DNA of 64,000 nucleotides, taken from sequence record NC_070999.1. One strand, given 5' to 3'. The notes under the pieces were generated by a model. It worked only from the letters and a program-made list of their open reading frames with translations. It did not search any database and was not told the DNA's origin. This document shows, piece after piece, positions 6,855 through 56,931 of this stretch (positions within the stretch are counted from its first letter, which is position 1; every line of letters begins with the position of its first letter). A program made the position numbers and the translations under genes.

Positions 6855-6885
6855 TCGTAACCTTAAGTCTAGATAAGGATATGCC

Positions 6886-7236
6886 GTGAAAGCTCTTGTA
6901 ACACTCTCTATTGTATTTCTGTTAACTATCTTTAGCTTCACAGCTATTAGCAAAGATAATCAACCTAATACCTCTCAGAAACGTTATATGAAAGGTACAG
7001 TTGTGCACGTAGATAACTGTGATGTAGAAACCAGTTATCACAAACTCTGTGTTGTGGTTATTGAACATAACGGAGTAGATAAACCTGTTACTGTTCTAGG
7101 TAAAGTTGATATTGGATCTGTAGTATACAAAGAGTGTAGAGTTAAACTTGGTTCTGTCCAGTGTAAAGAAGATTGGAAGAACTATATCAATGAAGACTTC
7201 TTAACTGGTGGAATTTATATTAAGGATAACACATGA
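6886..7236 (+). CDS. exported or membrane-anchored small beta protein
   Basis: N-terminal hydrophobic segment MKALVTLSIVFLLTIFSFTA followed by four Cys (possible disulfides). Confidence 0.65.
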   Translation: MKALVTLSIVFLLTIFSFTAISKDNQPNTSQKRYMKGTVVHVDNCDVETSYHKLCVVVIEHNGVDKPVTVLGKVDIGSVVYKECRVKLGSVQCKEDWKNYINEDFLTGGIYIKDNT

Positions 7237-7391
7237 CTTTACAAGAACGTTTGGAACAAGAAAGTAAAGAAACTTCAGTAATACAAGTACCTCTGGGAAA
7301 TGTTAACGACAACAGTATTCTGGAACAATATCCAGGAGAAAGGGTAACTTTAGCTGATTTTCAAAATAGTATTGATGTAACACCAAACTAA
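7233..7391 (+). CDS. small acidic protein (52 aa, not in ORF track)
   Basis: AAGGA RBS, ATGA overlap with previous stop, MTLQERLEQESKETSVIQV..., ends just before a terminator. Confidence 0.55.
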   Translation: MTLQERLEQESKETSVIQVPLGNVNDNSILEQYPGERVTLADFQNSIDVTPN

Positions 7392-12819: not shown

Positions 12820-13935
12820 ATGAGCTTTAATACAGGTAACGATTTACCGAGCTTAGACGAGCGTGATCTCTACGATAACGCTACTAATCTTGACAAAGCA
12901 ATGAATAGCACTGATCCAACCTGGACAGATAGATTTGGAGTTGAGAAACCTACAATTGACGCAGCTTTGAAATCTGCAGGATTTATGCCAGCTGGTTTTG
13001 ACTTTGTAACTGGCGGCACTCTTCAACCTGGAGATCGTAATAAAGCTGTTTATAACCCAGCACCTAATGGTGATAATAACTGGTATCGTTGGAATGGGTC
13101 GTTTCCAAAGGAAATTGCTGCTAATAGTCAACCTAATCCTAAAGATGAAAATAATTGGGTTCCTGTTATATTTAAATCTAGGTTCGGCAGAGAAAGCGAT
13201 ATTTTACAGTATATGATCGGACCTAATAAGGTTTCAATCACAGCTCATCGTGGATACTGGAGATTTTCTACTGAAAACTCTATTAAATCTATAACTAAAG
13301 CAGGTATGCTTGGTTTTGACATGGTGGAGTTAGATGTAGAGTTTACCTCTGATATGGTCCCTGTTTTGTTACATGACGTGACTTTAGATAGAACCACATC
13401 TGGTACTGGTAGCGTTAGAACAAAGACCTTTTCGGAACTTTCCGGTTTATACTTAACCAACGACCCGGATGGTGATCGTGAACCAATCCCTACATTCAGG
13501 GATGCTGTGATCGCATGTAAGAAGTTTGGTCTTTCGATTAACATAGATTGGAAATTTTCTGGGACGTGGTACGATGACGATAAGTATTTGCGTATCGTTT
13601 ATGATATTTTAATTAAGGAAGGTTATAGTCATAAATCATTTTTCATGATTAATGACCACAAAAACCGGCTCCAAATGAAAAATATAGATCCAACGATGTC
13701 TATGGGATTTTTAACTACTAATCCTTCCGATATTAATATTATAAACACCTTTTATCCTGGATGTTTAGTTGGAATGAGAGTAGGAACCTCGCAAACCATC
13801 ATAGATCAGTTTTTAGCTAATAAAACACCAGTCTACATCTATGGGTGTGAAACACATCAGCAGATTGAACAGGCGTTAAAATCTGGCGCTAGTTTTATTG
13901 AAACTAACGACTTTATACCTTCTGGAGTGATCTAA
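12820..13935 (+). CDS. tail-appendage anchor fused to glycerophosphodiester phosphodiesterase (GDPD) domain
   Basis: N-terminal ~115 aa are homologous to the tailspike 2 anchor. The C-terminal part has the GDPD motifs ITAHRG, ENS, VELDV, LLHDVTLDRTT and a terminal IETND. Confidence 0.85.
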   Translation: MSFNTGNDLPSLDERDLYDNATNLDKAMNSTDPTWTDRFGVEKPTIDAALKSAGFMPAGFDFVTGGTLQPGDRNKAVYNPAPNGDNNWYRWNGSFPKEIAANSQPNPKDENNWVPVIFKSRFGRESDILQYMIGPNKVSITAHRGYWRFSTENSIKSITKAGMLGFDMVELDVEFTSDMVPVLLHDVTLDRTTSGTGSVRTKTFSELSGLYLTNDPDGDREPIPTFRDAVIACKKFGLSINIDWKFSGTWYDDDKYLRIVYDILIKEGYSHKSFFMINDHKNRLQMKNIDPTMSMGFLTTNPSDINIINTFYPGCLVGMRVGTSQTIIDQFLANKTPVYIYGCETHQQIEQALKSGASFIETNDFIPSGVI

Positions 13936-18103: not shown

Positions 18104-18210
18104 TATATTATAACTGACTAGGAAATCCCGGTTAGCCCGGTAGGGCAATTTGTTTGTTATATAGCGGAATGAACGTAGTGAATGACGTCCTTCTTTATTT
18201 AATCTTTAAT
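18104..18210 (+). repeat. dispersed structured intergenic element, copy A
   Basis: Collinear similarity to 54461-54552: TATATTATA ... GCCCGG(G)TAGGGC ... GGAA..CGTAGTGA.. TCCTT..TATT..TCTTTAAT. Confidence 0.65.
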
Positions 18211-18226
18211 GTTTATTTTTCTACTT

Positions 18227-18258
18227 CCAAATATTTTCAAACATATATTATTAAGATG
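18227..18258 (+). promoter_or_regulatory. phage early promoter motif (copy 3)
   Basis: CCAAATATTTTCAAACATATATTATTAAGATG. Confidence 0.65.
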
Positions 18259-18291
18259 AAAGAGTAACAATGTTCATTAATCTAGGAAACA

Positions 18292-40807: not shown

Positions 40808-41227
40808 GTGGCGATGCTGATTATATTGCGAGCCCTGGTTAATCGCTGGATTGACCATTTGATGCATGGGACTACGGGTGAAGTCTCTTTAAAACGATTA
40901 CGTCAATTGTTACTGCGTTCAATTGTCATTGCGATAAGTGCAATCACCTTTAGTATAGGATTGACGGTACGATCTCTCATATGGTATTTGGATTCTAGAA
41001 CAATGGAACAGTCGATCAGGAAGATTGACGTACATCTTGTTCAACAACAGGAGAACATCAATGACCTGTTTCGTATTAACAGTGAACAACACAAAGCAAG
41101 TGTTAGACTTACGTCTGAGAACATTGAGTTGAAAAACGACGTGTTCACACTGCTTCGTAAGAACAAACAACTCACCCAAGAAGTAAAAAAGCTAAGGGAA
41201 GAGTTAATTGATCAAACCAAAACTTAA
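40808..41227 (+). CDS. TM plus coiled-coil protein (i-spanin-like architecture)
   Basis: Hydrophobic segment SIVIAISAITFSIGLTV followed by a long heptad region; function not established. Confidence 0.5.
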   Translation: MAMLIILRALVNRWIDHLMHGTTGEVSLKRLRQLLLRSIVIAISAITFSIGLTVRSLIWYLDSRTMEQSIRKIDVHLVQQQENINDLFRINSEQHKASVRLTSENIELKNDVFTLLRKNKQLTQEVKKLREELIDQTKT

Positions 41228-41293
41228 GAGAGGTGATTTAAGACTACACTTGCCATCAGTTGTCTAAAAGTAAACCAACGTACAGGGAACATT

Positions 41294-42718
41294 ATGAATA
41301 TCGTTTATTATCTTGTCAGCTCATTAGTAAAAGATAAAAACGTAGGACTCTCTGGTGGTCATGGTTATACCTACGATCAAACTAAAGAGAGTTCCCGTAA
41401 GCTGATAAAAGACACCCCATCCGGTTACGGTTACTTTGTGAATGGGAGTTATCAAAGTATCCCCGTTGAACAAGTAATGATATTGAATGGTCGTGGTCTT
41501 CGACAGGAGACTGATGTAGATGCATTCTTAGCACATTTGATTGAACTGCTGGAATACGCGGAACGAGAAAACGCTGAGAAGGTATTGATCATTCACGATA
41601 GTGTCAATGGTCAGAAACTCTTGGAAAATAATAAAGTATCTGAAAAGTTTGCTGATAATAACTATGTAAAGAGAGCGCGGGAACTTTACGGCAAACTTAA
41701 AGGTAAGATTATCTTTGACCTTGAGTATTACGCTAAAGGCGGGGAAGGTCCGAAACAAGCTCACAAACAGATGGAACTTGCTCAAGCAATGTTGGAACTA
41801 CCCATTGGGGAACCGGTGAGTATCGATATTGTTACTGTAAAAGAATATAAGAATCCTGAGAACGATTTTAACAAAGTGGTTACAGCGTCTCGTTGGTTCT
41901 TTAATACTGGTGACAAGTCAGAGTTTTACAACATTGATGAAAACGGTTATCGTCGGTACGAGTTTGGTCGGATAGATCCTCAGAAAGCGTATTATGGTAA
42001 AGCTACACCTGATGTCTTTTATTCAGCACTGTTTACCAAAACCCCGATTACTATTTTAGATAAGTTATACGACTTCTGTAAAGCAGTTAAGCCTAATCCG
42101 CTGAATCTGTTAGCAGCAGCAGATGTTGGAATGGTTAAGTCCAAGGAAATTAGTCGTGTAATCGACACCATCCCTGGAACGTTGACTAAGAACGATCTGA
42201 AAGCATCTATGAGTATTGCCGGTGTTACAGATCCTGTATTGGTTAACTTCATTGATCCCCCTGGTTTGAGTTATCGAATTAAAGATTTCCAATATAAGTT
42301 GAAAATGCTTCATTCGTACTTTATGCGCAGGGATGAGAATAACCAATTCCAAAAACAACATTTCTTGGACATCACTGATAAGTTCTTTGAACAAGACGCT
42401 AAAGGTAAATGGAAGATTCATTCTGACTTTACTAATAACACCTTGACTGTGCCTATCATGATCGATGCCCCAGGTTGTGTTAAACAAGTTAAGATTAATT
42501 TGGCTATTCGTTATGACATTCCAGAACGTAACGCTTTGAACAGTATTATCAATAATAAGATACCCGATTTCAAAGTGTGGATTGGATTGGACTTTAATGA
42601 TGACGCTGGTGTGATGTATTACACTGTGATCCAAACACCTGATTTCAACTTGGTACATTGTAACTCATGCGCTTCTCTTCGAGTATATAACTTAAAAGAG
42701 TTGGGAAAAGCTAAATAA
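41294..42718 (+). CDS. RNase H-like protein (phiKZ gp155-like), possibly catalytically degenerate
   Basis: G..GGHGYTY, VLIIHDS and GGEG...A spacing matches the RNase HI-fold N-domain plus a long C-domain; near uvsX as in phiKZ-like phages. Confidence 0.6.
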   Translation: MNIVYYLVSSLVKDKNVGLSGGHGYTYDQTKESSRKLIKDTPSGYGYFVNGSYQSIPVEQVMILNGRGLRQETDVDAFLAHLIELLEYAERENAEKVLIIHDSVNGQKLLENNKVSEKFADNNYVKRARELYGKLKGKIIFDLEYYAKGGEGPKQAHKQMELAQAMLELPIGEPVSIDIVTVKEYKNPENDFNKVVTASRWFFNTGDKSEFYNIDENGYRRYEFGRIDPQKAYYGKATPDVFYSALFTKTPITILDKLYDFCKAVKPNPLNLLAAADVGMVKSKEISRVIDTIPGTLTKNDLKASMSIAGVTDPVLVNFIDPPGLSYRIKDFQYKLKMLHSYFMRRDENNQFQKQHFLDITDKFFEQDAKGKWKIHSDFTNNTLTVPIMIDAPGCVKQVKINLAIRYDIPERNALNSIINNKIPDFKVWIGLDFNDDAGVMYYTVIQTPDFNLVHCNSCASLRVYNLKELGKAK

Positions 42719-42733
42719 CAATATATTGAATAT

Positions 42734-42764
42734 AACCTCTACTCTCCAATGGAGAGTAGAGGTT
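42734..42764. terminator. bidirectional terminator
   Basis: AACCTCTACTCTCC-aat-GGAGAGTAGAGGTT between convergent genes. Confidence 0.8.
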
Positions 42765-42781
42765 TACTTTATGCTTTATTT

Positions 42782-43738
42782 TTATACTTCGAGAGGTTTA
42801 ACACTCTCTTCAGTCATAACAGAATCAAAAATATCCTGCTCCTCACTAAGTACAGCCAAAGCAACACTCTTAAAGATCACAGCCATTTTACCAATCGACT
42901 TAGAACAGCTCTTGATGCAGTTAGCAGTGTGACTAGAAAGGTTAGCTAGATAGTTAGTTACTTTCTTGGAGTAACGATGATCTTGTTCGTTCTCAACTTT
43001 GCCTTCTGCAAGTTTCTTAGTCTGTTCGTTAGACTTCTCAAGAGCAGGGGTAACTTTAGCTTGCAGGGATTTGAAAGCAGAACGCAGTTCAGCGATCTTA
43101 GCACACAGAGTCGCTGCTTCGGTCAAAGACTTAACATCTGCTTCTACTTTCTTACCAACCAGTTTACCCATATCCTGATAAAGAGTGTTGATCTTACTAA
43201 GGTCAGAAGAGAGATCAGGGAAGTCTGCTTTAATCTTTTCAGCAGTTCCTTTGATATCTTTCATAAGTCCGTCTTTATCGATCAAATAAATATCATTCAT
43301 CTTACGAAGACCGACTGTATGAACAACTGTCTCTGGATCGAGTTTAGCAACGTGAGTTTTCAGTTTAGCTTCTGCTTTCTCACGTTCTTCCGGAGACATT
43401 GCAGCCAGAGCTTTATTAATCTTACCAGGGAGTTCATTAGCTGCTTTTACAGTTTTAGCTACCTGTTGATCTTGCTTAGCGCCAGCTGCACCAAAGAAGA
43501 ACTCTTTAATAGATTTGAGCCAAGATTTAATCATCTCGTAGAACTTAACAGCGCCATCTTTGATGGTCTGAACGAAACCCTCATTACCAGCGTACTGGTT
43601 AAAAGAAACACCGTTCAAAGACAAGCAAGTACGAGTGTAAGCTGCGTCACCATCTTTAGCATTGATATCATTATCGAGTGATTCAAAACCGGCCAGCAGA
43701 CTTTGGAAATGTTCTACATCAGAAACAAACACGTTCAT
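42782..43738 (-). CDS. internal head (inner-body-type) protein with propeptide
   Basis: AGFE-S and AGNE-G sites match the S/A/G-x-E cleavage motif of the phiKZ prohead protease, followed by an amphipathic IKDGAVKFYEMIKSWLKSIKEFF helix; Lys/Ala-rich helical body. Confidence 0.7.
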   Translation of the reverse strand: MNVFVSDVEHFQSLLAGFESLDNDINAKDGDAAYTRTCLSLNGVSFNQYAGNEGFVQTIKDGAVKFYEMIKSWLKSIKEFFFGAAGAKQDQQVAKTVKAANELPGKINKALAAMSPEEREKAEAKLKTHVAKLDPETVVHTVGLRKMNDIYLIDKDGLMKDIKGTAEKIKADFPDLSSDLSKINTLYQDMGKLVGKKVEADVKSLTEAATLCAKIAELRSAFKSLQAKVTPALEKSNEQTKKLAEGKVENEQDHRYSKKVTNYLANLSSHTANCIKSCSKSIGKMAVIFKSVALAVLSEEQDIFDSVMTEESVKPLEV

Positions 43739-54460: not shown

Positions 54461-54590
54461 TATATTATATGTCACCATAGAAACCCCTGGATGCCCGGGT
54501 AGGGCTTTGATTGTATATTAGTGGAACGTAGTGACTTCCTTTATTCTTTAATCATTATTTTTAAAGACGAGAAACTAAAGAATAAAGGAA
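54461..54590 (+). ncRNA. candidate structured ncRNA or cis-element, copy B
   Basis: Non-coding, bracketed by terminators, begins with TATATTAT, similar to 18104-18210, and contains a perfect 15-bp inverted repeat (54536-54550 with 54576-54590). Whether it acts as RNA or DNA is unknown. Confidence 0.4.
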
Positions 54591-54617: not shown

Positions 54618-54657
54618 CAAAACTCTACTTACCCTTAATTGGGTAAGTAGAGTTTTG
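54618..54657. terminator. bidirectional terminator
   Basis: CAAAACTCTACTTACCC-ttaatt-GGGTAAGTAGAGTTTTG, 17-bp stem. Confidence 0.85.
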
Positions 54658-54684
54658 TTTATTAATAACGCAGTAACATCTATG

Positions 54685-56874
54685 TCATCGGTTCATTGGT
54701 CGACCTACAAATAACTTACCCACGTCCCCTACAATAGAATCTGCGACTACATTGGCGACACTAGAAGCCTTAAACATGTTTTTTGTATCTGTGGTAAACC
54801 GTGTAAGTCTCCTGTTAAGGTCAGCATAGCGAAGAACAGTATCGAGGTAATCTACACCGGCAGTACGGTTTATCCAGTCATTGTACTTACCTCTATCACC
54901 TAGATAACGACTGGACTGTGCCGCCATGTTAGCAAGATCAAGAGGGTTGGTTACACGGCTAATCGGTACTGACATGATTGGTTCGAAATCAGCCACATCA
55001 ATTGTGACACGACAGTTACGAGGTTTCATGTCTGTAGTCCAACCAAGCGGGCCTTCTCCAAAGGTAATACTGGCATTTCTTACCATCCCCATGCGGATAA
55101 TTGATTTGCCTCGTTGGAAACATTTAATCATGAATGGTGAACCGTAGGTAGCACCACCGGTACTAAATGGTACAATAAACGGTAGAATCAAAGACAGTGG
55201 TAGGAACACATTTGTAGCAATGGAATAAGGATGGGCGTAAGGGGCTTCAAAGAACAAGCTAAAACTTTCTGTATGAAGATTAGCTGTACTATCTTGCCAG
55301 TGTTCTGGTATCTCTACACGAGAGTTACCAAGCAGCGCCATAGGAACATTACCTATGACAGAACCAGCTGCGACACCAGCTACAGCATCTTTTAATTTAC
55401 CAACTGTGTCGTCAATTAATCCGATTCCGGTATTTCCGCCTTGGATATTGAACTTGAAATCTGAAACAGCTTGGACTGTACTATTGAATGTAGAAGCTAT
55501 AGCTGACTGTTGGAAACTATTACTAAATGAATCTGATACAGGTCCTGTACCTTCTACTCTAAATGTAACACCATCCATGCCACCATAGAGCTGATCCATT
55601 AATACAGAACCGATTTCAGTAAACCAACCACCTTCATCAATACCTGAGTCATCAGTGATAGTGGGAACATTACCTTCTAATTGTGGTGGATTTGAACTAC
55701 TAGCTGTATTGTTATCCAATCCAACACTTTCGTTGTTGAGAGCGTTTACTCGCGCTCTAATATCATTAAGGGGATTTTCAGATACTCCACTAGAAACAGA
55801 AAGAGCTGGATTAGAGGGTTTGATTTTAGAGTAAGCTTCTGGATCGGTATAAGCGGAGGCTACTTCAGGATAAGCTATTTCGTCTTCTCCTCTAGAAGCC
55901 GCTACACTGCGTAATTCAGCATCCAAGTACTCTTTGGTCCCTTTACCATCAGCTCTTGTTCCTTTCCCGTTAACGAAGTTACCGTCACGAATAAGCTGAT
56001 CTAGAATTTGTTCAATAGCCTGGTCTTTTTCTTCAACCGTCCTAATCCCGGTATTCTTATCAAGGTCTTTTACTTTAGATAAGAAATGACGATACTTACG
56101 TACACCTCTTAGAGCAAGTCTAGTGATGTCGATTGTACCATCTTCGTTAATAGCGTCTGGGAATAAGGAATTCATGTATGCGAAGTTATTACGCATAGCG
56201 GAACTATTAGTTTCGTACCCCCTATTACCGGCTTTGGCTCGATCACCTGCTCTTACATCCAAGGTGTTACCTTGCTTGGGTAATACAGTAAGAGTATAAC
56301 CGGCGTTTACCATTAAGTCGTTGAAGATACCTTGGGCGGCGGTAAAGTACATCCCCATTGCTGGTTTACCGTAATACCACTTGTTCTTAGGCTCATTCAT
56401 CAGATATTCAAAGAAGTTGTAACTAGTGGCTAGGATCTGTGCTGGCCAGAACGCAATAGCGCCTGCGGCTTGACCTATGTAGAAAGCCCAAGAAGGAGCA
56501 CGTCCTTTAGTTACCATTACAGAAGCAGAATAATCGAACATGTTCAAAAGGAATGTCAAGAGCCCTGTAAACTCTGGTACACAAGCCGTAAATGTAGCAG
56601 TTTGTGCATTATCATGATGAATGCGCTTATAATACCTTCCCATATTCCCCATACGGTTTTCCATTATCGGCTTAGGATAAGGATCGGTATTTAAACCGTA
56701 ACCTGGTAGAGGATTAATGTATCGATTATCTCCAATAGCTGTGGAGAAGAAACTGGTATAAAGATCGTAGTCAGATCTGATAAGCACTTCTTCTGGATTA
56801 CGAATACCGTCACTCATTAAACGAAATGAACGAGATATCACGTTATCGTCTTTATAAGGAAGCTTGACGCTCAT
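54685..56874 (-). CDS. tail tip or baseplate-hub-type structural protein (phiKZ gp182-like position)
   Basis: 729 aa, immediately downstream of the giant tail lysozyme gene as in phiKZ gp181-gp182; GAGG RBS; call is mostly from synteny. Confidence 0.6.
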   Translation of the reverse strand: MSVKLPYKDDNVISRSFRLMSDGIRNPEEVLIRSDYDLYTSFFSTAIGDNRYINPLPGYGLNTDPYPKPIMENRMGNMGRYYKRIHHDNAQTATFTACVPEFTGLLTFLLNMFDYSASVMVTKGRAPSWAFYIGQAAGAIAFWPAQILATSYNFFEYLMNEPKNKWYYGKPAMGMYFTAAQGIFNDLMVNAGYTLTVLPKQGNTLDVRAGDRAKAGNRGYETNSSAMRNNFAYMNSLFPDAINEDGTIDITRLALRGVRKYRHFLSKVKDLDKNTGIRTVEEKDQAIEQILDQLIRDGNFVNGKGTRADGKGTKEYLDAELRSVAASRGEDEIAYPEVASAYTDPEAYSKIKPSNPALSVSSGVSENPLNDIRARVNALNNESVGLDNNTASSSNPPQLEGNVPTITDDSGIDEGGWFTEIGSVLMDQLYGGMDGVTFRVEGTGPVSDSFSNSFQQSAIASTFNSTVQAVSDFKFNIQGGNTGIGLIDDTVGKLKDAVAGVAAGSVIGNVPMALLGNSRVEIPEHWQDSTANLHTESFSLFFEAPYAHPYSIATNVFLPLSLILPFIVPFSTGGATYGSPFMIKCFQRGKSIIRMGMVRNASITFGEGPLGWTTDMKPRNCRVTIDVADFEPIMSVPISRVTNPLDLANMAAQSSRYLGDRGKYNDWINRTAGVDYLDTVLRYADLNRRLTRFTTDTKNMFKASSVANVVADSIVGDVGKLFVGRPMNR

Positions 56875-56898
56875 CTTGTTACCTCTAAAAAGAAAATG

Positions 56899-56924
56899 GA
56901 GTAGGAGGTTTGACCCTCCTACTC
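56899..56924 (-). terminator. intrinsic terminator hairpin
   Basis: GAGTAGGAGG-tttgac-CCTCCTACTC with a T-rich tail on the minus strand, after the giant tail gene. Confidence 0.7.
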
Positions 56925-56931
56925 AGTTTTA

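Follow-up and report, generated by a model that had tools for sequence, protein, structure and literature searches.

The stretch of DNA analyzed here (the window; 64,000 nucleotides [nt] of record NC_070999.1) is identical to the last 64,000 nt of the genome of Aeromonas phage pAEv1810 (OL964756.1; 235,066 bp; genus Ferozepurvirus), and a position in that record is the window position plus 171,066. The pAEv1810 record lists split beta/beta'-like RNA polymerase (RNAP) genes and a phiKZ-like internal head protein, which identify the phage as a phiKZ-type jumbo phage. The subject of this analysis is a noncoding intergenic element that the window contains twice. Copy A lies between the divergent genes _191 (minus strand; 1,049 amino acids [aa]) and _192 (plus strand), at the start of a long run of small plus-strand genes. 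Copy B lies between the convergent genes _247 (plus strand) and _248 (minus strand), the second of which encodes a homologue of phiKZ gp182 (E value of 3e-37). The stretch that holds copy B is free of genes up to a plus-strand terminator, with no open reading frame (ORF) in between.

A sequence-only reading of the window had described these two loci as sharing a set of motifs in a fixed order, and all of the features that it listed are present at both, at the positions that it gave. The copy A hairpin (18165 to 18187) pairs as that reading claimed, with C-G, G-C, G.A, A.G, A-T, T-A, G.A, A.G, A-T, and C-G pairs around a GTA loop, and the copy B hairpin is GGAAC-GTA-GTGAC, also as claimed. Its view of copy B as copy A with 4 nt removed from each arm was borne out: no single 8-nt deletion turns A into B. 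A gap-penalized local aligner, unprompted, opened two 4-nt gaps between the copies, one in each arm, and this placement indicates that the long hairpin is the short hairpin plus one U-A/G.A/A.G/A-U unit. The local alignment score of copy A versus copy B was 53, compared with 14.9 ± 2.3 (maximum, 27) for 2,000 shuffles, and copy B was the top nonself match to copy A across the 64 kb on both strands. The AT-rich box at the head of each copy, TATATTATA, has no other exact copy in the window; this 9-mer is not significant alone, since 1.34 occurrences are expected by chance. The pattern GCCC-GG(G)TA-GGGC, in contrast, matched twice in the window versus an expectation of 0.00. The two loci are clearly real, related copies of one element. 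The genome-wide search for copies that had been proposed was performed as a structural scan of the 235-kb genome, which returned these two full modules and no third.

Both copies are present in the sister phages AVP1, ACP1, PS1, and PS2, at identities ranging from 83 to 97%. Copy A is 95.7 to 97.4% identical in these phages, compared with 82 to 92% for the surrounding 4 kb of coding flanks; in a separate comparison, the intergenic element was 95% identical where coding DNA was ~80% identical. Across the five phages, the positions that vary in copy B are loops and linkers. For the GCCC/GGGC hairpin (H1), three phages have a GGGUA loop and two have a GAUA loop; the outer pairs of the 5' hairpin (H0) differ, while the G.A hairpin (P2) and UCCUU are unchanged. 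The H1 stem is kept with loops of GGUA, GGGUA, or GAUA, and TATTATA is kept in all 10 Ferozepurvirus copies. Pairing of the copy B tail with a purine-rich, Shine-Dalgarno (SD)-like segment is partly kept in AVP1 (12 of 14 pairs), ACP1, and PS1. Downstream of copy B, AVP1, PS1, and PS2 have an HNH endonuclease gene that pAEv1810 and ACP1 lack, so the element does not depend on this gene.

Relatives were sought by scanning IMG/VR and metagenomes for the exact pattern of hairpin plus tail. The same hairpin and tail were found in jumbo-phage contigs of 150 to 246 kb that otherwise have no detectable DNA similarity to the window. Erwinia phage Asesino was among the lineages recovered, and its relatives Stratton and phiEaH2 carry a GCA loop in place of GUA. 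The 21-mer P2 of copy A is identical in the uncultured lineages L018/L169, L170, and L164. Further genera were reached through a neighboring baseplate assembly gene, and the syntenic position was found to hold diverged versions of the element in the SPN3US-like genus Seoulvirus (SPFM16, Proteus phage 7, and STsAS), Machinavirus (Machina, pSal-SNUABM-04, ChrisDB, and Caitlin), and Derbicusvirus (EarlPhillipIV). The module was thereby found in at least five named genera (Ferozepurvirus, Erskinevirus, Seoulvirus, Machinavirus, and Derbicusvirus) and in three uncultured lineages. The neighboring baseplate protein is ~28% identical to its Ferozepurvirus homologue, a figure for one matched protein only, yet a 19- to 27-nt core of the element is identical between phages. 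The syntenic search did not find the element beside the baseplate gene in phiKZ or in Vibrio phage pVp-JHP1101. When 185,579 genomes of bacteria and archaea were scanned, the only matches were due to chance and lay in coding DNA, and the element therefore looks phage specific. A pattern of AGCGGA-N5-25-GACNTCCTT proved too loose for IMG/VR, where nearly all of its matches were due to chance, and L084 was ambiguous and was dropped.

In every lineage, the module reads GGA-[stem-loop]-GAC-N-YCCUU, the exception being module 1 of the lineage designated group 2, which reads GAC-A-UACUC. The P2 stems occur in 11 versions of 2 to 8 bp. Their pairs were counted with our own script, as MAFFT did not register stems of unequal length; the 62 pair positions comprised 55 Watson-Crick pairs, 1 G-U pair, and 6 G.A pairs, with none unpaired. 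The identity of the pair differs at most stem positions. The short stem is A-U/C-G in Ferozepurvirus, group 2, and Erskinevirus and G-C/C-G in EarlPhillipIV (GGA-GC-GUA-GC-GAC), which amounts to a compensated change from A-U to G-C relative to Ferozepurvirus. ChrisDB and Caitlin differ in the loop-closing pair (U-A versus C-G), and the 7-bp stems of SPFM16, STsAS, Machina, and group 2 differ at 3 of 7 positions, those nearest the loop, with all of them paired. The loop is mostly GUA; GCA, AACG, UACA, UCCC, and GGA also occur. Between the invariant GGA and GAC lie 7 to 19 nt, and because both trinucleotides are constant while this spacing varies, they must meet through the hairpin. The covariation that the sequence-only reading had proposed looking for is thus present in P2, where all 62 pair positions in the 11 stem variants are paired by our count. 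These compensatory changes in relatives, together with G.A and G-U pairs that form on the plus strand only, support its claims that structure is under selection and that the hairpin is strand specific.

In all lineages in which a gene follows, the element has the same orientation as that gene. In Erskinevirus, group 2, and Seoulvirus, an SD sequence and ATG come 25 to 60 nt after its end, and in group 2 the downstream gene is replaceable with the element unchanged. These data establish a hairpin module that is strand specific, shows covariation, has an invariant base (GGA/GAC) and an invariant pyrimidine tail, and is located at the starts of transcription units. The features of both copies are listed in Table 1.

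Table 1. Positions of the two copies of the element and of associated features in the window (PWM, position weight matrix)
Feature	Position in window	Strand	Remark
Copy A AT-rich box TATATTATA, putative -10-like start signal	18104..18112	+	Boundary of the A/B similarity on the 5' side
Copy A 5' hairpin H0, UGACU-A-GG AAAU CC-C-GGUUA	18115..18134	+	RNAfold
Copy A hairpin H1, GCCC-GGUA-GGGC	18135..18146	+	-8.2 kcal/mol
Copy A P2, long form, GGA-AUGAAC-GUA-GUGAAU-GAC	18166..18186	+	Base of G-C plus tandem G.A; second tandem G.A within the stem
Copy A pyrimidine-rich tail, N-UCCUU-CUUUAUUUAAUCUUUAAU, anti-SD-like	18187..18210	+	
Promoter-family member between copy A and gene _192	18226..18258	+	PWM score of 47.0; context, outside the repeat
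Copy B AT-rich box TATATTATA	54461..54469	+	CTATTATAT in ACP1, PS1, and PS2
Copy B 5' hairpin H0, CCA-UAGAAACCCC-UGG	54475..54490	+	CUAGG-AAACC-CCUGG in PS1/PS2
Copy B hairpin H1, GCCC-GGGUA-GGGC	54493..54505	+	-7.8 kcal/mol
Copy B P2, short form, GGA-AC-GUA-GU-GAC	54523..54535	+	Same 13-mer in group 2 and Erskinevirus
Copy B pyrimidine-rich tail, UUCCUUUAUUCUUUAAU	54536..54552	+	
Copy B purine-rich SD-like segment, AAAGAAUAAAGGAA	54577..54590	+	Perfect 14-bp pairing with tail at 54536-54549, -14.1 kcal/mol
Terminator-like hairpin, then T run	54618..54657	+	Closes the gene-less unit holding copy B; kept in all five phages
Promoter-family core positions	570, 3567, 18244, 23895, 27999, 32750, 35874, 37403, 52169	+	

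Upstream of the module, every lineage has an AT-rich box, the 5' hairpin H0, a G-rich block, and an AU-rich linker. Ferozepurvirus has TATATTATA or CTATTATA as the box, two uncultured lineages have GTTAATATA, and SPN3US-like phages have TTTTTTACG with TTTATTC after it. H0 often forms around a GAAA-type loop, and its outer pairs vary by lineage; equivalents of the copy A hairpin with other outer pairs were read directly from the sequences of copy B, group 2, Erskinevirus, and ChrisDB. In Ferozepurvirus, the GCCC/GGGC hairpin forms the G-rich block, and two G5 tracts stand at the H1 position in other genera. In SPFM16 and Machina, the minimum free energy (MFE) fold is a three-way junction of helices P1, P1a, and P2, with P1 formed by the second G tract and the YCCUU tail. 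The sequence of P1a, a hairpin in the linker, changes with its pairing kept (GUUUAUG/CAUAAAC, GAUCU/AGAUC, and UCUGU/ACAGA). Folded independently, SPFM16, Machina, L018, and L170 all have MFE structures that contain P1 together with a P2 on the G-C/tandem-G.A base. In L018 and L170, P1 is local (AUAAGG/CCUUAU) and is extended by GAGAGA/UCUCUC in one and by AAACU/AGUUU in the other. Erskinevirus and group 2 carry two modules in tandem. The leader of L018 runs past the module for ~380 nt (6870 to 7250, minus strand) and contains five more perfect hairpins separated by AUCCUU / AUCCCUAUCCC tracts; a G4-like run, GGGAGGGGTTGGGGTGGGG, lies upstream of this leader. A scan flagged no terminator at P2 in either copy, and the 7-bp P2 of SPFM16 is followed by AUCCUUUUUUGUUUUUG.

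The genome of pAEv1810 also contains a sharply defined promoter family with the consensus TCyATAwwTTTTCArAyn-kATATTAy-T...TG. It has ~26 sites genome-wide, all of them on the plus strand and upstream of plus-strand genes. A conserved AT-rich early-promoter motif has been described for RNAP-encoding jumbo phages, and the pAEv1810 family fits it (PMC7598289). These sites are probably the virion-RNAP early promoters of pAEv1810. The same consensus occurs in Erwinia phage EarlPhillipIV (L190) and in metagenome contig L170. On the minus strand, the copy A box reads TATAAT and faces gene _191.

The best explanation for the element, on which we are evenly divided, is that it is a structured RNA, a 5' leader or small RNA (sRNA) with an anti-SD-like tail, that serves as a riboregulator. 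It is best filed as a new family within phage structured leaders and sRNAs. Among the three roles that the sequence-only reading had offered (a replication or priming origin, a packaging or anchoring signal, and a small structured RNA), a small structured RNA made from a promoter-like start fits best, in view of the co-orientation with genes, the adjacency to an SD sequence and ATG, and the terminator after copy B; the promoter-like start itself was not supported, as TATATTATA falls outside both the phage promoter family and sigma-70 promoters.

In the mechanism that we propose, plus-strand transcription would start a few bases past the AT-rich box. The base of P2 would consist of one G-C pair and two sheared G.A pairs (GGA...GAC), followed by one variable base and then the YCCUU tract. 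In SPN3US-like phages, the tail, the upstream G tract (P1), and P1a would build a three-way junction at which the GGA/GAC motif lies. The module would then act as a riboregulatory platform. Its UCCUU tail is complementary to an AGGA-type SD sequence and could have three alternative pairing partners: the G-rich strand upstream, the GGA within the module, and a purine-rich (SD or SD-like) segment downstream. Which of these prevails would depend on what binds the GGA/GAC junction, be it a protein, a ligand, or a tertiary contact, and the translation or read-through of the following genes would be controlled in this way. In Ferozepurvirus, copy A stands at the head of the long rightward block of small genes. 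It is equally possible that copy B, a gene-less unit of ~190 nt ending at its own terminator, would be made as a stand-alone sRNA. The specific switch model is less secure than the riboregulator reading as a whole. Within it, we suggest only tentatively that the GGA-hairpin-GAC-N-YCCUU junction may be the sensor of a new riboswitch-like or protein-operated class of switch, common to several chimallivirus-type genera and gating operons of small genes, whose conservation would stem from one conserved partner (a small molecule or a host or phage factor).

Several observations weigh against the structured RNA explanation. Transcription of the element is a prediction from the sequence. When the TATATTATA boxes were scored as members of the main phage promoter family, the PWM scores were -21.9 (copy A) and -33.8 (copy B) versus 25 to 56 for the members, with which the boxes have just the ATATTA core in common; no match to a sigma-70 promoter was found for them either. 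In copy A and in EarlPhillipIV, which have the same element-then-promoter order, a strong promoter sits between the element and the gene, and transcripts starting there would therefore lack the element. The G.A hairpin alone, folded as RNA with nearest-neighbor parameters, gave -0.5 and 0 kcal/mol for the two copies, no better than shuffles, although such parameter sets may underscore sheared G.A pairs and GNA loops. With the hairpin alone near 0 kcal/mol, conservation of P2 must stem from recognition or from its position in a larger fold rather than from intrinsic stability. RNAalifold analysis of nine SPN3US-like sequences gave P1 pairing potential in nine of nine, with one or two sequences breaking at 3 of 5 core pairs, and 0 pairs in which both sides had changed; pairing between G-rich and CU-rich strands is also promiscuous. 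The P1 helix is consequently plausible rather than proven. In Ferozepurvirus, P1 competes with H1, and a three-way junction is not obvious in the MFE fold. Finally, the partner invoked to explain the invariant GGA/GAC is hypothetical.

To our knowledge, gene regulation in nucleus-forming jumbo phages is poorly understood beyond promoter motifs. The module is nearly letter-for-letter the same in phages of Aeromonas, Erwinia, Salmonella, and Proteus, and because its core is conserved while the neighboring protein that was compared is only ~28% identical, it is a strong candidate for a shared regulatory device or host contact point. With its small size (13 to 25 nt plus the tail), it is open to direct tests. 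It can also serve as the starting point of a model for a new RNA family. Should it prove to be only a stabilizing or processing hairpin, it would still be a useful annotation landmark for the start of a transcription unit.

An unlikely alternative is that the element acts in trans, either as an sRNA whose UCCUUAU tail is a seed against SD regions or as a decoy whose GGA motifs titrate a conserved RNA-binding protein of the host or the phage in the manner of a CsrB-type sponge. The gene-less copy B would suit such a role, with its own terminator and its retention in five phages irrespective of the HNH gene, and so would the retention of the element sequence when the downstream gene is swapped; the identity of the core in phages that infect Aeromonas, Erwinia, and Salmonella would fit a partner, perhaps in the host, that is itself conserved. 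However, the element is mostly fixed at the head of an operon beside an SD sequence. Two loci in a genome, each with one or two modules, are also few for a sponge, GGA lies at the base of the stem and not in the loop, and CsrA-type binding leaves the invariant GAC unexplained.

That the plus-strand hairpin is extruded from single-stranded DNA (ssDNA) or as a cruciform and acts as a hairpin promoter, priming signal, or origin is very unlikely. A GNA-loop hairpin with sheared G.A pairs on one strand only and the divergent intergenic placement in several lineages speak for this idea, and G-rich tracts on the RNA-like strand of SPN3US-like phages could favor R-loops; copy B and L170, however, lie outside divergent regions. 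The replication or priming origin suggested by the sequence-only reading finds no signal in cumulative GC skew, which rises along plus-strand genes, dips only over the minus-strand genes _191 and _248/_249, and so merely follows gene strand. Its description of the hairpin as very stable in ssDNA is not supported by the DNA folding energies (-0.8 and 0 kcal/mol), which were no better than those of shuffles and carry the same caveat on sheared G.A pairs and GNA loops. The analogy with hairpin promoters fared no better. N4 virion-RNAP promoters have a 3-nt loop with a central purine (-11), G at -10 and -8, and a 5- to 7-bp template-strand stem, and they are used by a T7-like virion RNAP (PMC4496689). 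Like the element, they are short hairpins that have meaning on one strand only, with a sheared G:A pair and a 3-nt loop of the G-N-A type. In contrast, the stems of the element measure 2 to 8 bp, its loops (GTA, GCA, AACG, TACA, TCCC, and GGA) are sometimes 4 nt long, and the loop center is T or C in most variants, against the N4 rule. pAEv1810 encodes multisubunit RNAPs; its record annotation lists only RNAP genes of this type (beta/beta'-like), with no dedicated search made for a T7/N4-like RNAP. An ssDNA signal would also leave the conserved tail, the P1 pairing, and the SD adjacency without a role.

We regard as highly improbable a duplex-DNA operator for a phage transcription factor acting at the neighboring, often divergent promoters. 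The intergenic DNA is promoter rich, and inverted-repeat symmetry can coevolve with a dimeric protein and so could mimic covariation. Nevertheless, the GGA-GAC spacing of 7 to 19 bp would shift the sites around the face of the helix, and the "half-sites" are strictly asymmetric (GGA versus GTC) in every lineage, both of which argue against an operator; the orientation to downstream genes, moreover, is always the same. A relic of a mobile element, either an IS200/IS605-type right end with omega RNA or homing HNH cargo, is close to refuted: the weak full-length match of copy B to Rfam IS605-orfB-II (19.2 bits; E value of 0.48), including an exact GAUUGUAUA, and the HNH gene after copy B in three sister phages would favor it, but the score is far under the gathering score of 88 and was judged due to chance, GAUUGUAUA is not kept in copy A, PS1/PS2, or other genera, no IS605 match was found for copy A or any other lineage, the neighboring proteins have no TnpB/OrfB or transposase domains, and the element occurs with and without HNH and in two copies per genome.

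The HNH gene itself is 1,368 nt long, has its own GGTATATTATG box ahead of it, and is inserted past the copy B terminator (L005, 661 to 908; L007 and L008, 660 to 897; compare window positions 54660 to 54690). It amounts to a presence/absence polymorphism of a free-standing homing-type gene.

Comparison with known RNA families gave no identity for the element. Rfam 15 had 0 matches at the gathering threshold in the window, and scans of both copies and nine related loci at permissive E values gave nothing consistent on the element. No tRNA or tmRNA was found. The G of GGA pairs with the C of GAC directly next to the G.A pairs; with no 3-nt bulge, this is not a kink-turn. The hammerhead core with stem II resembles the element: both contain a three-way junction, and in both two sheared G.A pairs lengthen one of its hairpins (GA-[hairpin]-GA). 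The hammerhead, however, has CUGANGA and GAAA strands, whereas the element has a variable 5' flank (UAGC, UAGU, CAGA, CCAA, AAAC, and others) and GAC-N on the 3' side, and it has no Rfam ribozyme match. A small protein was likewise rejected. A 37-aa coding sequence of ACP1 (ACP1_0002; L004, 454 to 567; equivalent to window positions 18169 to 18267) spans copy A and the following promoter. In copy B, the 37-aa frame has a GTG start in pAEv1810 only and GCG in the other four phages, and the frames of copies A and B differ before the indel; no ORF over the element is common to the other genera. The coding sequence is therefore probably spurious.

Three kinds of regulatory RNA invite comparison. 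The HK022 put RNAs are cis-acting antitermination stem-loops that act on the host RNAP. Like the element, they occur as two copies per genome, as paired stem-loops just past a promoter at the start of an operon; unlike it, they work with host RNAP, while phiKZ-like phages have their own polymerases, and no sequence similarity was noted. SD/anti-SD leader switches share a pyrimidine tail complementary to an AGGA-type SD sequence, alternative upstream partners, and a position 25 to 60 nt before the start codon in several genera. They differ in that Ferozepurvirus copy B has no directly following ORF and a promoter intervenes after copy A, and no Rfam family match was obtained. In giant Pseudomonas phages, sRNAs derived from 5' untranslated regions (5'UTRs) are conserved between genera, among them sRNA005 of 201phi2-1 and a phiKZ sRNA upstream of gp182 (PMC11512511). 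These are short structured RNAs at the heads of transcription units in phiKZ-like jumbo phages, as the predicted transcript of the element would be, and are likewise conserved between genera, but they lack the GGA...GAC module and differ in locus and sequence. Copy B is not the counterpart of the sRNA upstream of gp182: the equivalent spot is at ~56875 to 56931 (minus strand), and copy B lies past the 3' end of _248 on the opposite strand. In that spacer, between _249 (gp181-like tail lysin) and _248 (gp182-like), a T run and an SD sequence come after a hairpin of the terminator type (GAGTAGGAGG...CCTCCTACTC), and the spacer mirrors the phiKZ gp181/gp182 spacer, the site of the reported conserved 5'UTR sRNA.

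Several further observations were made in the same genomes. Four related metagenome contigs (L174, L175, L176, and L178) have in common another conserved noncoding stretch, ...GGCTCATTGGAAAGCGCGTAGTGA(A/T)C(G/T)TCCTTATTAGTG..., which matched the search pattern and is without the GGA-hairpin-GAC module. Gene pAEv1810_189 (12820 to 13935, plus strand), annotated as hypothetical, encodes a tail spike N-terminal domain and a glycerophosphodiester phosphodiesterase (GDPD) domain (Pfam; E value of 6.5e-23), and its product is therefore likely a receptor-modifying tail spike. Outside the window, a 2.4-kb stretch without an annotated gene lies beside HNH gene _34 (pAEv1810 record positions 40862 to 43290). 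It carries several TATATTAT boxes on the minus strand and a strong hairpin, GGA-CGATCCC...GGGATTG-GAC, at 41343, and it could be the seat of noncoding RNAs or of an intron.

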